Of a stretch of DNA of 64,000 bases, positions 14,500 to 24,046 are shown piece by piece; position 1 is the first letter of the stretch; the number at the start of each line of letters is the position of its first letter. Below the pieces are notes generated by a model that saw only the letters and a list, made by a program, of their open reading frames with translations, was not told where the DNA came from and made no database searches. Position numbers and translations under genes: made by a program. This stretch comes from Geosiphon pyriformis uo1 (lineage: Eukaryota; Fungi; Glomeromycota), in contig JAAOMT010000076.1 in assembly GCA_016748015.1 (NCBI GenBank), positions 124,001-188,000 on the forward strand, written 5' to 3'.

Positions 14500-15612
14500 T
14501 TAATGATAAGATGTTGAAAATTCGGATTGTTGCATATCGAATGGAATGAAATACTCGGTAAAGAAAGAAGTGGTTGAGTTAACAATGTTATTTGAATCAT
14601 CAGTAGATAATTGTAAAAGATCGATGGAGGGTTGGTCAATAAAAGTATGATCCATAGCTGGATCGAAAGGAATAAGGTCAAAATCCAAATAATCATTTGT
14701 CCATGGCGTAGCCAATTCTAAATTATTCAAGAAAAATTCATCTAATGGAACCTGAGAACTAGTTGTATAATCAAATGTACTGTAAGCTTGCGTGCTGGGG
14801 GTTTCGTTTGAAGAATTAAACGTTGATGATATTACTGAAATTGAAGGAGAGTCTAATTGATAGTCATTATCAAGAAGTTGTGGGAATATGGGTGAAGAAA
14901 AGGCATGTGAAGGAGTATTTGGAATTGAGGTTGTTTCAGGAAATGGGAGGCTATTATGAAATTTTATTGGTGAGGGTTTATCGACAACTAATAGACATTT
15001 ATTATCGGGAACTCTCTTAAATCTTTTGCCTTTTGAAACTCTAAGCTTTTTTTCATTCAATAGCGGTAGTTGGGAAAGATGATGAATTGTAAATTTTGTT
15101 GATTCTTTAGAAGGTTCAGCCGTGATGGAATCTTTAAATACCATAGAGTTACGTTTATACATATACAATTGTTCAACCTCTCTCGCAATTTTACGATACT
15201 GGGTTTTAATTCTTCGTGGAGCAATTTTCCATGAATCCGCAGCTATACGAGAAACTTCGGTCATCCTAACCTTATGTTTCCTAATATGAGCTTGCAACTC
15301 TTTTTGTACCACTTTTCTATAAATAAAAAATTCATTAGGCATCCTTGGATTTTTGGTCAATTTTGTTTTAAGTAATAAATTATTAACTAATTCTTCAGCA
15401 GTTGTTTTTGGTGGAGATGGAAGTGCAAATGGCAAAGTTTTAGCCCAGACTATTTCAAGATCACTTTCGGTGCCTGAATCTTCGAATAGTGGTATTAATT
15501 CATTATTGTAATCTGTGCTGATGACAGCATCCACATTAAGATCATTAAGTGATTGAGATGTTGACTTATTGTTGTCACTGGTCAAGGCCGGTAAGATTAA
15601 TTGAAACGACAT
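14500..15612 (-). CDS. MATA-HMG-type HMG-box transcription factor
   Basis: KNPRMPNEFFIYRKVVQKEL...MTEVSRIAADSWKIAPRRIKTQYRKIAREV is an HMG box; Ser/Pro/acidic C-terminal region; intronless 370 aa. Confidence 0.9.
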   Translation of the reverse strand: MSFQLILPALTSDNNKSTSQSLNDLNVDAVISTDYNNELIPLFEDSGTESDLEIVWAKTLPFALPSPPKTTAEELVNNLLLKTKLTKNPRMPNEFFIYRKVVQKELQAHIRKHKVRMTEVSRIAADSWKIAPRRIKTQYRKIAREVEQLYMYKRNSMVFKDSITAEPSKESTKFTIHHLSQLPLLNEKKLRVSKGKRFKRVPDNKCLLVVDKPSPIKFHNSLPFPETTSIPNTPSHAFSSPIFPQLLDNDYQLDSPSISVISSTFNSSNETPSTQAYSTFDYTTSSQVPLDEFFLNNLELATPWTNDYLDFDLIPFDPAMDHTFIDQPSIDLLQLSTDDSNNIVNSTTSFFTEYFIPFDMQQSEFSTSYH

Positions 15613-17305: not shown

Positions 17306-18248
17306 CTATGTCTCCTCTTGTTCACCACTCTCACTTTCTTGAGATGGTTCTTCGTCGTCTTCTTGCTCTTCCGGTTCTTCTAGTTCTGGCTCTTCAACTG
17401 GACTCATTTTCTCTGTTTCTTGCTTGACCGTGGCATTTGAGGAATTGACAACTTTCTTTTTACCACCAGTAGGAGCTAAAAGTGATAATAAAATTCGCTA
17501 AATAAATCATCATCCTAATATAAATTAAAGAAAGTATTTTAAAAGAAAAGGTTTCACTAACCACCATTCGCTTTTTTAGCTTCTCTCGACTTTTGGGGCA
17601 AGAGTGCCTGATGAATGTTTGGCATCACACCACCTTCGGCAATAGTAACATGATTAAGCAACTTGCTCAACTCTTCATCATTACGAATGGCTAACTGAAT
17701 GTGACGGGGAATGATTCGAACTTTTTTGTTGTCATGAGCCGCGTTCCCAGCTAATTCCAAGATTTCGGCAGTCAAATATTCGAGAACGGCGGCCAAATAG
17801 ACTGGTGCGCCACTGCCAATGCGGGCAGCTAAATTGCTTTTACGCAAGAATCGATGAATACGACTAACTGGAAATTGGAGTTCCGCCTGAAAAATGGAGT
17901 GACCGTTTTGTAGTGAAATTAATTGAGCGTCAAGCGTTCAGTGTGAAGATACATGAGAAAATATTTTTAAAAACATGACTATAATTTCTTTAAGAAAAAC
18001 AAAACTCGAAGTAATTTCAACGTGAGGGAAACCTCTTACTGAGCCACAAGATGCAACTTTATATCAAAATTTAATCGCTTTATACGATATATATAATTCT
18101 GAATCTCTAAGGCAATCTATTGAGAAAAATCCAAGTTCCTATCCAAACTTACCCTTTCAGAACGAGAAATTTTTTTTTTGGTTTCTTCATTTTTCTCGCT
18201 TGGCAAAGTTTTCGCACCCTTACCCTTTCCTACGCCTTTACCAGACAT
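17306..18248 (-). CDS. H2A: Histone H2A variant 1 with long acidic C-terminal tail (3 exons, about 196 aa)
   Basis: Exons 18248-18153 ([32 protein letters not shown]), 17886-17562 ([16 protein letters not shown]...[47 protein letters not shown]...[14 protein letters not shown]) and 17475-17306 ([56 protein letters not shown]). Donors GTAAGT/GTTAGT, acceptors CAG/TAG, phases consistent. Confidence 0.9.
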
Positions 18249-18922
18249 AATTTCGTTTTTATTTCGTGAAAAAGAATTTTATGTCACTAAGTGGTAGTTT
18301 GGAACTTGGAGAAATAAAAGAGATATGTTAAACAAAAGTAAAATAAGAGTGGATAGAAAACAGTGATAATTTTTTTTTGGAAGTTTATGTTATGTGATCG
18401 TGAACGCGTCATAATTGATCAATGTTGCTTAGCAAAGCACAAATATAATTTATGATTCTCTTACTGATTATTCTCAAGTCTATTATGTCTTTGCCTTAGT
18501 AAGTTCTTTTCCTTTTTACTCAAGTTGGAAATTGAAAAACTTTGGTAAAGATAACTAAACGTTAAGAAAAGAAATCTTTGAGCCTTTGTTTCAGAACCTT
18601 TCTTCGTTAAAATGGTGAAGAACATAAAATCATGACCAAAAAAATTTACATTAAGCTTTTTATAATATTCAGAGATTTCATAACTGGGCATGAATTTGAG
18701 GTCTCGTTCTTGAATGGACATTCAACTTGAATTAAGTTTAATTATCAAGCAAAACTTATACGTTCAATCTTCATATAGTTTATACAGTATTCCGAGTTTT
18801 TTTACGTTGTAGAAATATAGTTCAACTTCGCATTTAAATACATCTAGAAAATATAAAGTATATCATAATTTTACTCGAGCTAAAGAAAATAAACGGCTGA
18901 TCTAGATGGAGAAGTTATTCTT

Positions 18923-19174
18923 TTAGAGTATTTGCAATGGTACCACCTCAGCAAGATCTTTATACTGCTCAATTTCTCTTTCGGAAGCGTCTATTTCCCT
19001 CGTAATATACAACAAATTACCTGCCCAATGACTTGAAATATACTAGGCTTTTTTTACATGGTAGCCAAAGATATATTTATATCTAATGATTATTTTAAAC
19101 ATAATAAATGGATCGGAAGGACAAATATTCTGGGAGTCAATATATGTTTCAAGAAGAAAACTGGGCTCAATGAA
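18923..19174 (-). pseudogene. Degenerate HMG-box remnant between the two H2A genes
   Basis: One frame reads FIEPSFLLETYIDSQNICPSDPFIMFK...A*YISSHWA[30-nt GT..AG segment 19020-18991]DASEREIEQYKDLAEV. It resembles the neighbouring HMG gene (IIEPVDLL...SQNPRLPNEYFIYR...W-x10-YRKIA). One internal stop. Confidence 0.45.
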
Positions 19175-19206
19175 TTATAAATTATGAGGGAATGTAGGAA
19201 GAAGCC

Positions 19207-20106
19207 TTAATTTTTCTTTCGAGCTTCTCTACTCTCTTCGTTTTCCCCAGGCTCACTTTCTTCGGATGGAGTCGCACTATCATCATCAACCTCTTTATAA
19301 GTGGGTTCTTTCCTTTCCATATCCGCAATTTTTCTTTTACCCCCGGTCATGGCAGGTACTAATTCAATCAAGATAAAGGCCACCATATAAATTATAGGTT
19401 TAAATTCATAACCGAATTCAATCTCATAATCAGATATCAAAAGAAAGCCAACTTACTAGGCGCATTACCCCTTTTAATATTAGTCTTAGCCTTTTGGGGT
19501 AACAAGCTCTGATTAATATTCGGCAACACTCCACCTTGGGAAATAGTCACGTGTCCGAGTAATTTGTTCAATTCTTCGTCATTGCGAATGGCCAATTGAA
19601 TGTGACGAGGAATTATACGAGATCTCTTGTTATCTCTTGCAGCATTGCCCGCCAATTCAAGAATTTCAGCGGTAAGGTATTCAAGAACGGCGGCCATGTA
19701 AACAGGAGCACCGCCACCGATTCGTTGAGCAAAATTACCTTTACGCATTATGCGGTGAATACGTCCTACGGGGAATTCCAGGCCGGCCTGTAAGGAAATT
19801 GATACAAAATTAGATTTAGGTTAATTTATGAATGGGAGAAATATCTAGGTTGACCCATTAATAAAAAATATTTTTTAAAGACAATTCCCTTTGGAAAAAA
19901 TTTATATTTTGGAACTTCATACCAATGAATAAAAAACTTTCTATAAATGTAAAGTCTTTTCTTCTAAAAAAAAATACATGCTTATAGGGAAACGCAGCAC
20001 CTACCTTCTTGGAACGGGATATTGGTGCACTTTTTTGGTTATCGCCTTGGCTTGGCAACGCCTTAAAACCTTTACCCTTGCCTTTTCCTAAACCTAAGCC
20101 GGACAT
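19207..20106 (-). CDS. H2A: Histone H2A variant 2 with long acidic C-terminal tail (3 exons, about 194 aa)
   Basis: Exons 20106-20005 ([34 protein letters not shown]), 19787-19457 ([37 protein letters not shown]...[16 protein letters not shown]) and 19358-19207 ([50 protein letters not shown]). Intron positions and phases are equivalent to variant 1. Confidence 0.9.
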
Positions 20107-21064: not shown

Positions 21065-22099
21065 TTAATTCAAATTAGCGTAATACTCTAAAGGCGAAAT
21101 GTAGTTTTGCATTGAATTTTCGTAATCGTTCCATTCAACAATAGTTTGATAATCATGCAAACTCGTAGAATGCCCTGTATTCTCATTTAAAAAGGTATCA
21201 GAATATTTGGGCAAAAGATCAATATCCAGAGAATGAATGTCGTCAGTTTGTCTACGTAATTGTTGAGGAAAAAATGAAGCAGTATTTAATAAGGGCGAAG
21301 GCTGATTAAGCCAAAAAAAATTGTCGGATGACAAATGCATGACTGCAGTTGGATCATGCTCCATCGAACACGGGCTTAAAGGAATCTCTTCAAGTTGAGA
21401 CGGTGAGTTCCCTCTTGCTTCAGATTGTTTCGACTTGGACTCTTCAACTGGATTCTGTCGTTCCTGCTGCTGTTCCCGCAATTGATAATTTTTCCAACAA
21501 GCAGTACGTTCAACGTTAAATAACTTTTCAGTTTCATACGCAATTTTTCGGTATTTATTTTTTTCTTTTGATCCGCATCGTTGCCACAAGATTGCAGACA
21601 ATTTAGAAACAAGAGTCATTCTGAATTTATAACCGGTCGCTTTTAATTGTTGAACTAAAGCCATTCGATAAATGAAGTATTCGTTTGGCAATCGTGGATT
21701 TTGCGATTTTTTGTTTAATAAATTTTTTAATAAATCCACAGGTTCAATGATTGGGGGTAAGGGGAAAACAAGATGGATTCCTTGAGATGGAGTTTCAGCA
21801 GGGATTTCACTCGTTGAAATTCTTGCATTTAGATGATCGGAACCAGTGAATACTAAATGCTGATTGGTGGATGTTTCAAAGCTTTCGAATTTACCAAAAA
21901 TAGGATAGTTTCTGATAATCGTTTGAAAAAATTCTTCAATTTCTCCTTTTGAATGACTCGAAATATCGAAATATATTTCATCATATTCATCACAATTATT
22001 TCCTTTATTTAACATATCTAATGTCGTAGATCTGTTAAGGGAAAAATCTTTGGAGGCTTCCAAAGGTCTTTCTTGATTTTCTTTGAAAACATTCACCAT
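21065..22099 (-). CDS. MATA-HMG-type HMG-box transcription factor (paralogue of 14500..15612)
   Basis: QNPRLPNEYFIYRMALVQQL...MTLVSKLSAILWQRCGSKEKNKYRKIAYETEKLF; first ATG at 22099. Shares NPRxPNE[FY]FIYR, RMTxVS and YRKIAxExExL with the other HMG gene. Confidence 0.9.
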   Translation of the reverse strand: MVNVFKENQERPLEASKDFSLNRSTTLDMLNKGNNCDEYDEIYFDISSHSKGEIEEFFQTIIRNYPIFGKFESFETSTNQHLVFTGSDHLNARISTSEIPAETPSQGIHLVFPLPPIIEPVDLLKNLLNKKSQNPRLPNEYFIYRMALVQQLKATGYKFRMTLVSKLSAILWQRCGSKEKNKYRKIAYETEKLFNVERTACWKNYQLREQQQERQNPVEESKSKQSEARGNSPSQLEEIPLSPCSMEHDPTAVMHLSSDNFFWLNQPSPLLNTASFFPQQLRRQTDDIHSLDIDLLPKYSDTFLNENTGHSTSLHDYQTIVEWNDYENSMQNYISPLEYYANLN

Positions 22100-24046
22100 G
22101 AAATATTTGACCACGTAGATTTAATAAAACCTATTTTCGAAAGACCAAAAATATTCCTATTTAAAAGTCTTGGTGTTGAATGTATGTATCAAAAATAAAT
22201 CATATCAGAATGTTATTATATATTAAATCTGAAAACTATTAAAACACATTTCAGGTCTACGATAAATGAGAACTAAACTTTTTTTTTCATAATTCAATTT
22301 GAAACATGTACTACAAGAGTGGAATCCCCAAATAGTTAAATAGTAATTCGAAATTTACAAGCAGAAATTATAAAAAGCAAAGTTCTGACTAACAATTTGG
22401 GACGATAAGTGTCTTCAAAAAGACTTGGTATACAAAATTAGCTAAAACACAATGAATATCAAGAAAATTTTTTGATTTCTAATGTTAACTTAACCTTGAG
22501 GTGTCGCACATAAATTTTTATTGGGACAACTTAATGCTAATAATAATAATAATAATAATTATTATTATTCAATTAAGCTTTTTTCGTTTTCATTAATTTG
22601 AAACGTGTTGAAAAGTAGAATTTTAGAGTCTTTCCAAATTATTTTTAAACATTCTTTCGGCCATCTTTATTTTTATGATCGTCAAGTCACTCTACAAAAC
22701 TGATTGCAAATTATGAAAAACCCCTTTTCTCAGGCCTACAATTAATTTTCACCTACTTTGGAAATTTCCTCATTAAGTCTCAACCTCAATTGCCAAAATT
22801 CCTTTGTTAAAAAGTTGCACATTTAACTTTTAATTTAAGAGCGGAGAAGCTAAACCGTTTGCTTGATTCTTCTAGATTGATAAGAAATTATTTTCATGGT
22901 TATGCGCCATTTTATGATGATCATCATTGTGCGATTTGACATATTTGGTAAACAAAGTTCTGTGGCACGGCGAGGTGGGTGAGACAGGGTTTTACTTTGA
23001 CCTAGTATTTTAATTTATAAATGATTTTTAAGATATCTTGGGGTATATCCAAAAAGTATTAACTCTACGTCTTATTGAGATAGAATTAGAGAGTATATTT
23101 AACTTGCCGAAATCCTGCCACTGCGAGGTTTCGAAAAAGGAAGTATGCCCAACACACATTACATTTTAGAATAAATCCGTAGTCGGTTATTAATATAGGG
23201 AAATTTCTTTTCACAGAAATAGCCTTTTTAAGTTTTTTATAATTGCAAAAAGTCTTAAGCAAAGACCAGGTTGATATTGAAATATGATAGAAAGAAACAC
23301 TTTAAAATTTTAAAGCCTTCCATCTCAATTAGACATTATAATGGATTTTCCAGTTGTGGCAATGAAAATTAATTCTTTATAAGGAATGGCAAATCATTTT
23401 TGATGCATTTCTTTTTATTAATTGATCTATCATGAAGCTTTATTGCTTGAAAATGATTCATTCTAAACGAATCCACCCCATGAAATCGTTGTATACAAAC
23501 GCATTTGACTCGCACTATTCCATCAAATCATAATTGTGTCATTTTGCTATTTTTTTCTATTTTTGAAGTCGTAATGAATTTGAATTATTCGTTCTAGACT
23601 TTGTGGTATCTTCATTTTAAATAGGCACGCCAACAGAAAAACCTGTCTCGTTTTGTCATTCGAGAATTTCCTGAGTATAGAGTTTTGTTCTAAAAACTGA
23701 GAATTTAGTTATTGATAAACGACATTAGATCTATTGGATCATGAAATATCCACAAAAATATATTCGAATATTTTGGATTAAAAATAAAATGATTATATTT
23801 CAAATTCCAATAGCAAAATTAACATGTGAAACTCATTCGAATTCTTTTCTTTTAACCTGACAGGTGAGAAAGAAACATAATGAGGAGGGAAAAAATTGAT
23901 CGGCTTGGTTAAAGGATATGCCACTGGCCAGAATAGAAATTCGTAGGGGGGATGCATTTTTATGAATAAAACTTGGGGCAATAAAAAAAGGTATGTCCAA
24001 ATGGTAATATTTCATCCCTTGTAAATTCTATCATATTTCAACGAAA

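Follow-up and report, generated by a model that had tools for sequence, protein, structure and literature searches.

Two three-exon H2A genes of Geosiphon pyriformis and a Glomeromycotina H2A variant with a basic-then-acidic C-terminal tail

The window analysed here, a stretch of 64,000 nucleotides of Geosiphon pyriformis DNA, contains on its minus strand two co-oriented H2A genes of three exons each, designated A (194 aa) and B (196 aa); these are, respectively, variants 2 and 1 of an earlier note on this DNA. Exon 1 of gene A (20005..20106) contributes 34 codons of a GKGKG-rich N-terminal tail and closely resembles that of the Ambispora gerdemannii orthologue. Intron 1 (19788..20004) is in phase 0 and lies immediately 5' of the AGLxF motif, and exon 2 (19457..19787) encodes the histone fold, the acidic-patch residues and the docking domain, all of them intact. 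Intron 2 (19359..19456; 98 nt, phase 1, GT-AG), if retained, would bring a stop within a few codons. Exon 3 (19207..19358) encodes a 50-residue tail in which a basic block is followed by an acidic block (14 D/E, 10 K/R). In gene B, exon 1 (18153..18248) holds 32 codons of a GKGKG-type N-terminal tail, and intron 1 (17887..18152) is again in phase 0 before AGLxF, at the same site as in gene A. Exon 2 (17562..17886) encodes a histone fold and docking domain that are more diverged, with several conserved glycines substituted and a long branch. An in-frame TAG lies within the donor of intron 2 (17476..17561; 86 nt, phase 1, GT-AG), so that its retention would yield an H2A of near canonical length, and exon 3 (17306..17475) encodes a 56-residue tail with 19 D/E, 5 K/R and an SQE 12 residues before the stop. 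The earlier note had proposed for both genes a third exon behind a phase-1 intron, and our analysis placed these introns at the same nucleotides (19456-19359 and 17561-17476).

Two single-exon HMG-box-like ORFs flank the H2A pair, at positions 14500-15612 and 21065-22114 of the window. They are 38% identical in the box and fall under the Pfam cut-off. An HMG remnant was looked for between genes A and B and none was detected, and no HMG neighbour is present in the gene lists of orthologous H2A loci.

Gene A was searched exon by exon and by means of a public protein model. The exon-2 search identified this model, G9A89_011510 of Geosiphon pyriformis (P0011), as residue-for-residue identical to gene A, indicating that an independent annotation splices the gene in the same way. 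The GC content of exon 3 is coding-like in both genes, at 0.43-0.44 compared to 0.21-0.31 in the introns. Splicing of exon 3 is thus predicted for A and B from gene models. The Pfam domains Histone and Histone_H2A_C were matched above cut-off in gene A and at both loci, and the best PDB matches are H2A. Both proteins have the histone fold, the H2A C-terminal docking domain and an acidic patch, the last composed of three helix 2 glutamates and the DEE motif, and on these criteria both are H2A. An AlphaFold model of low confidence (mean pLDDT 50) confines the helices to the fold and places none beyond residue 111, which is weak evidence.

We compared the two proteins with the known classes of H2A. 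H2A.X is defined by a C-terminal SQ(D/E)-hydrophobic motif (PMC8015243), which A lacks altogether and which the internal SQE of B does not provide. The likeness to H2A.X and to canonical fungal H2A consists of a very close core and a GGK-type linker; the resemblance of APTGGKK to the H2A.X linker, pointed out in the earlier note, is real, the human H2A.X tail reading APSGGKK (PMC3380720). Plant H2A.W also has an extended C-terminal tail placed to act on linker DNA (PMC8015243, PMC3380720), but its KSPKK/SPKK tail is basic and protects extra linker DNA, whereas the tails of A and B have no SPKK or KSPKK and end acidic, with a net charge of the distal tail of -6 and -16, respectively. With macroH2A the genes share a basic stretch after the docking domain and the possession of introns (PMC8015243). 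A macro domain is excluded in A and B, where the stop follows the tail and exon 3 gives no Pfam match; a stop codon ends the tail in every species, and the only Macro match of the genome is on another contig, C675. Neither the core sequence nor the intron site of A and B is of H2A.Z type, and the H2A.Z of this genome is a distinct and distant gene (L006). The short H2As (H2A.B/L/P/Q) are defined by a truncated docking domain and a reduced acidic patch, both of which are intact in A and B.

The tails open with TGGK[KR]K and share an acidic block, as the earlier note had described. Its description of them as acidic polyanions is appropriate for gene B, with a net charge of -11 after the LLP motif and -16 in the distal half, but not for gene A, in which the tail has a net charge of 0 (+6, then -6) and the last residues are basic. 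The order of charges is shared more widely, the first half of the tail carrying +4 to +6 and the second half -4 to -16 in gene A and in all eight orthologue or paralogue tails measured; the corresponding halves of the canonical H2A tail carry +4 and -1. These values point to a charge pattern, rather than a sequence motif, as the conserved feature of the variant tails. Among 397 H2A-type proteins, picked by similarity to these genes and hence no census, the last 20 residues are net acidic (3 or more) in 13; 11 of these are the fungal variants considered here, and the remaining two are animal models that seem to result from read-through. TGGK, which the earlier note took as a defining motif and a mimic of the H3 tail, could not be upheld in either role. 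It is absent from every orthologue and from a third Geosiphon copy described below, while in the first match set GGK is found in 17 of 117 ordinary H2A C-terminal tails and TGGK starts 25 of 117 H2A N-terminal tails, so that the motif can be regarded as ordinary H2A tail sequence and mimicry of H3 is unnecessary to account for it.

The tails of A and B are more alike than expected from composition-preserving shuffles, with p about 0.0008 for the whole tail, p about 0.0006 for the last 25 aa, and 0 of 5000 shuffles for the first 15 aa. Both have kept TGGK-x-K, and 9 of 13 residues are identical in an acidic block that they share. In the core, silent sites of A and B are saturated (pS 0.78, pN 0.14), which rules out recent duplication or gene conversion as the source of the likeness of the tails, and the introns align at background level only. 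The view that retention of the tail motifs reflects selection was thus borne out. Purifying selection on exon 3 was also found when four species pairs were pooled (pN 0.09 vs pS 0.31, Fisher p 6e-5), the signal coming mostly from the Acaulospora pair (omega 0.09); omega is 0.46 for the Diversispora pair and about 1 on 15 codons for Gigasporaceae, and the Funneliformis pair is uninformative. The sequences suggest that A and B are old paralogues of an intron-containing H2A variant found across the Glomeromycotina.

A search of other species indicated that the lineage-specific H2A class suggested by the earlier note is broader than it had claimed, variant H2As of the same layout being present in at least nine other Glomeromycotina species from three orders. 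H2As with a GKG-rich N-terminal tail and an acidic C-terminal tail were found in Ambispora, Diversispora, Acaulospora, Gigaspora, Dentiscutata, Cetraspora and Funneliformis, and a partial Racocetra copy clusters with them. No copies from Rhizophagus, Paraglomus or Entrophospora are among the matches listed. The codon boundary of intron 1 is identical in all nine orthologous genes read at the DNA level, and in the same nine intron 2 is in phase 1 and lies 5-13 codons after LLP, in a stretch too variable for its exact position to be aligned. An H2B neighbour is absent from the gene lists of the orthologous variant loci. On this basis we propose a class, the Glomeromycotina acidic-tail H2A, having a phase-0 intron before AG[LV]xF, a phase-1 tail intron, a basic-then-acidic tail and no linkage to H2B; A and B have all of these features. 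In a tree of the cores, gene A groups with the Ambispora copy (97/86). The backbone is poorly resolved, and a single variant clade is neither shown nor rejected (p-AU 0.21), so that the intron layout is better evidence than the core tree for a common origin of these genes.

In the public model of the Ambispora gerdemannii gene (CAG8570054.1) the first exon is incorrect. The genuine one is found 113 nt upstream of exon 2 (L009:7072-7173) and closely matches exon 1 of gene A. A partial protein labelled Dentiscutata erythropus (P0241) matches the Diversispora eburnea variant from end to end and probably represents cross-contamination in the Dentiscutata erythropus assembly. A protein search with the tail only recovered gene A itself as the sole match, and in profile searches, fused double-H2A models and animal models with read-through predominated. 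Metagenomes searched with a degenerate codon pattern yielded animal-like and protist-like H2As, none of them a mycorrhizal transcript or an H2A with a long acidic tail, and an Atlas search returned only generic H2A clusters.

The canonical H2A of Geosiphon is intronless and lies head to head with H2B, and its core is identical in six Glomeromycotina proteins. In contrast to this invariant core, the cores of the variants have diverged. Three further sequences of the genome have the layout of A and B. One (L004) is a third intact acidic-tail gene, another (L007) is degenerate and carries a deletion within the docking domain, and the last, a frameshifted pseudogene (L083), lies next to the intact gene in divergent orientation (G000:C639:1598131-1600022 and 1619334-1619540). 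This inventory suggests that the acidic-tail family is turning over within the Geosiphon genome. Gene B, with its long branch and the replacement of several conserved glycines, may be specialising or relaxing. Another gene (L005; G000:C789:326524-326784) encodes an H2A with a long N-terminal tail, different intron sites and a basic, SPKK-holding C-terminal tail like that of plant H2A.W, so that the genome carries basic-tailed and acidic-tailed H2A variants alike. Genome searches gave one match for H2B and one for H1. Two divergent H3 genes (L023, G000:C596:225350-225853; L026, G000:C789:420281-420852) look like centromeric H3 paralogues.

The earlier note had stated that canonical fungal H2A ends in SQE[LY], which is incorrect for this lineage. 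Canonical Glomeromycotina H2A ends without SQ (L002 at G000:C661:265211-265480, P0022, P0024, P0026, P0027, P0251 and P0252), and a terminal SQ motif is found in no H2A gene of this Geosiphon assembly. Among the matches listed, H2As of Endogone, Mortierella, Mucorales, Coemansia and chytrids mostly end in SQE plus one residue. From these sequences, the gamma-H2A site appears to have been lost in the Glomeromycotina.

Searches of the genome for PI3K-like kinases matched TOR, an SMG1-like gene, TRRAP, Vps34 and Stt4, and the GLGDRH codon pattern is in frame at TOR and SMG1 only. ATM/Tel1, ATR/Mec1 and DNA-PK gave no match in this whole-genome search, which treats each exon separately and is lossy: it also missed a Pik1-type kinase, and it did not extend to the DRHxENI places at C654:499098 and C656:246025. 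The genome likewise gave no matches for UME, TAN, Hus1, Rad9, Rad1 or Rtt107-BRCT, leaving the 9-1-1 clamp unmatched; Mre11 was found. We treat the absence of ATM and ATR as a lead and not as a result. The missing matches for these kinases and for the 9-1-1 clamp would agree with the disappearance of the terminal SQ from every H2A. A 'MEC1' listed for Glomus (PMC3184777) carries a PI3Ka domain, which in the Geosiphon genome marks Vps34 and Stt4 only, so that the Glomus assignment may be mistaken. The internal SQE of gene B had been considered a possible Mec1/Tel1 site; it occurs in one paralogue only and away from the terminus, and with ATM/ATR unmatched in the lossy search we do not retain that assignment.

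The nearest analogue of the variant is found in the bdelloid rotifers, whose H2A.1-3 (H2Abd; PMC2642717) are also lineage-specific proteins with a near-canonical core and long C-terminal tails extending 28-43 residues past LLPKK. Bdelloids, like the Glomeromycotina, are a lineage without the terminal SQ(E/D)-hydrophobic motif; they have no canonical H2A, one variant has an SPKK-like motif, and the passages considered do not describe the tails as acidic (PMC2642717). Unlike the bdelloids, Geosiphon retains a short canonical H2A, and its variant tail is acidic at the end and encoded on its own exon. The long-tailed H2As of the two lineages are presumed to have separate origins. The H2A of a giant virus, clandestinovirus, also has a long tail of mixed charge, but giant-virus histones are viral and far diverged, with 33% identity in the fold, and the fungal cores are much nearer to canonical H2A (PMC9145170). 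In the open literature, with subscription journals and histone databases lying outside the search, we found no description of the fungal variant, which is apparently undescribed so far. Fungi are usually taken to possess canonical (H2A.X-like) H2A and H2A.Z only. In HMGB1, NAP1/SET and FACT, disordered polyanionic tails serve as binding sites for H1, the H3 tail or H2A-H2B. These are separate proteins, whereas here the acidic stretch sits in the core histone itself, and by analogy the two kinds of tail may act in a similar way.

The C-terminal tail of H2A touches DNA and H1 (PMC3510494), and H2A.W and macroH2A, through their basic extensions, shield an additional 10-15 bp of linker DNA (PMC8015243). 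The reading that we favour, if tentatively, is that the acidic-tail H2A is a replication-independent variant whose acidic end weakens contacts with linker DNA and H1. According to this model the variant would be laid down outside S phase, as inferred from histone-variant genetics. Its C-terminal tail would emerge from the nucleosome at the DNA entry/exit site, which is also the binding site of H1. In the proximal, basic half, the hold on DNA would be kept as in canonical H2A, whereas linker DNA would be repelled by the distal, acidic half that exon 3 encodes; this half would also be a competitor for basic partners, namely the C-terminal domain of H1, the H3 tail and the tail's own basic block. 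The H1 gene of the genome provides something for the acidic tail to compete with. Variant nucleosomes would then be more open and bind H1 more weakly, the electrostatic opposite of the H2A.W tail and the macroH2A linker. A chaperone-like or DNA-mimic action, as inferred in the earlier note, is plausible. The net neutral tail of gene A and the several orthologous tails of 23-25 residues indicate that the effect of the tail could be small.

An alternative that we consider unlikely, yet the strongest of the competitors, is that the acidic end serves as a docking or modification site, for instance a CK2-type site or a point at which a chaperone or remodeller takes hold, and leaves the physics of the nucleosome itself unchanged. 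This would account for the 9 identical positions of the acidic block in the face of saturated silent sites, and S/T-x-x-D/E sites are present in A, B and several orthologues. Across genera, however, only charge is held in common and no sequence motif, and the tails of Funneliformis and Gigasporaceae have no such site. Marginally less likely is that function resides in the changed core (loop 1 and docking domain) and the GKGKG N-terminal tail, the acidic tail being a tolerated low-complexity extension under weak constraint on composition. Loop 1 does depart from the canonical sequence in most variants, omega for exon 2 (0.02-0.05) is far below that for exon 3, and tail length ranges from 23 to 67 residues; retention of the acidic-last pattern in three orders and the pooled excess of pS over pN in exon 3 argue against this explanation. 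It is improbable that intron 2 is often retained, in which case the genes would chiefly yield a short H2A with no tail, and the acidic form would be a minor or regulated isoform. With the intron retained, translation would end at once in gene B and within a few codons in gene A, and in Gigaspora margarita two products are annotated on one contig (P0244 and P0248; L073:5001-5718), the shorter of which appears to enter intron 2 and has no acidic tail, but exon 3 is spliced in the public models of many species and has both coding-like GC content and pooled constraint. We consider it very improbable that the tails work through short mimic motifs, TGGK serving as a decoy for H3 K14 and the internal SQE replacing the usual phosphorylation site of the DNA-damage response. 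In favour of this, both A and B retain TGGK-x-K despite silent changes, a replacement might be of use in a genome whose H2As have no terminal SQE, an internal [ST]Q is also found in the Diversispora and Acaulospora morrowiae tails, and the H2A.X tail offers a parallel. Against it, TGGK is absent from all orthologues and from the third Geosiphon copy, GGK is ordinary, SQ is absent from A and five other tails and nowhere terminal, and the kinases concerned were not found in the lossy search.

The variant tail has a charge opposite to that of the known long-tailed H2As and, under the favoured model of an acidic end that weakens linker-DNA and H1 contacts, may loosen DNA packing. A more far-reaching and rather doubtful proposal is that arbuscular mycorrhizal fungi have rewired their H2A biology, losing the gamma-H2A site, possibly together with ATM/ATR and the 9-1-1 clamp, and gaining an acidic-tail H2A with a built-in chaperone-like element that would make nucleosomes self-loosening, perhaps for repair or transcription in multinucleate hyphae. 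If true, this would parallel the bdelloid rotifers. With the terminal SQ motif lost from every H2A gene of this genome, the question arises how these fungi signal DNA breaks. The retention of a third type of H2A in three orders of the main plant-symbiotic fungi extends the known variant classes by one and provides a natural test of how the charge of the C-terminal tail controls linker DNA and the binding of H1.
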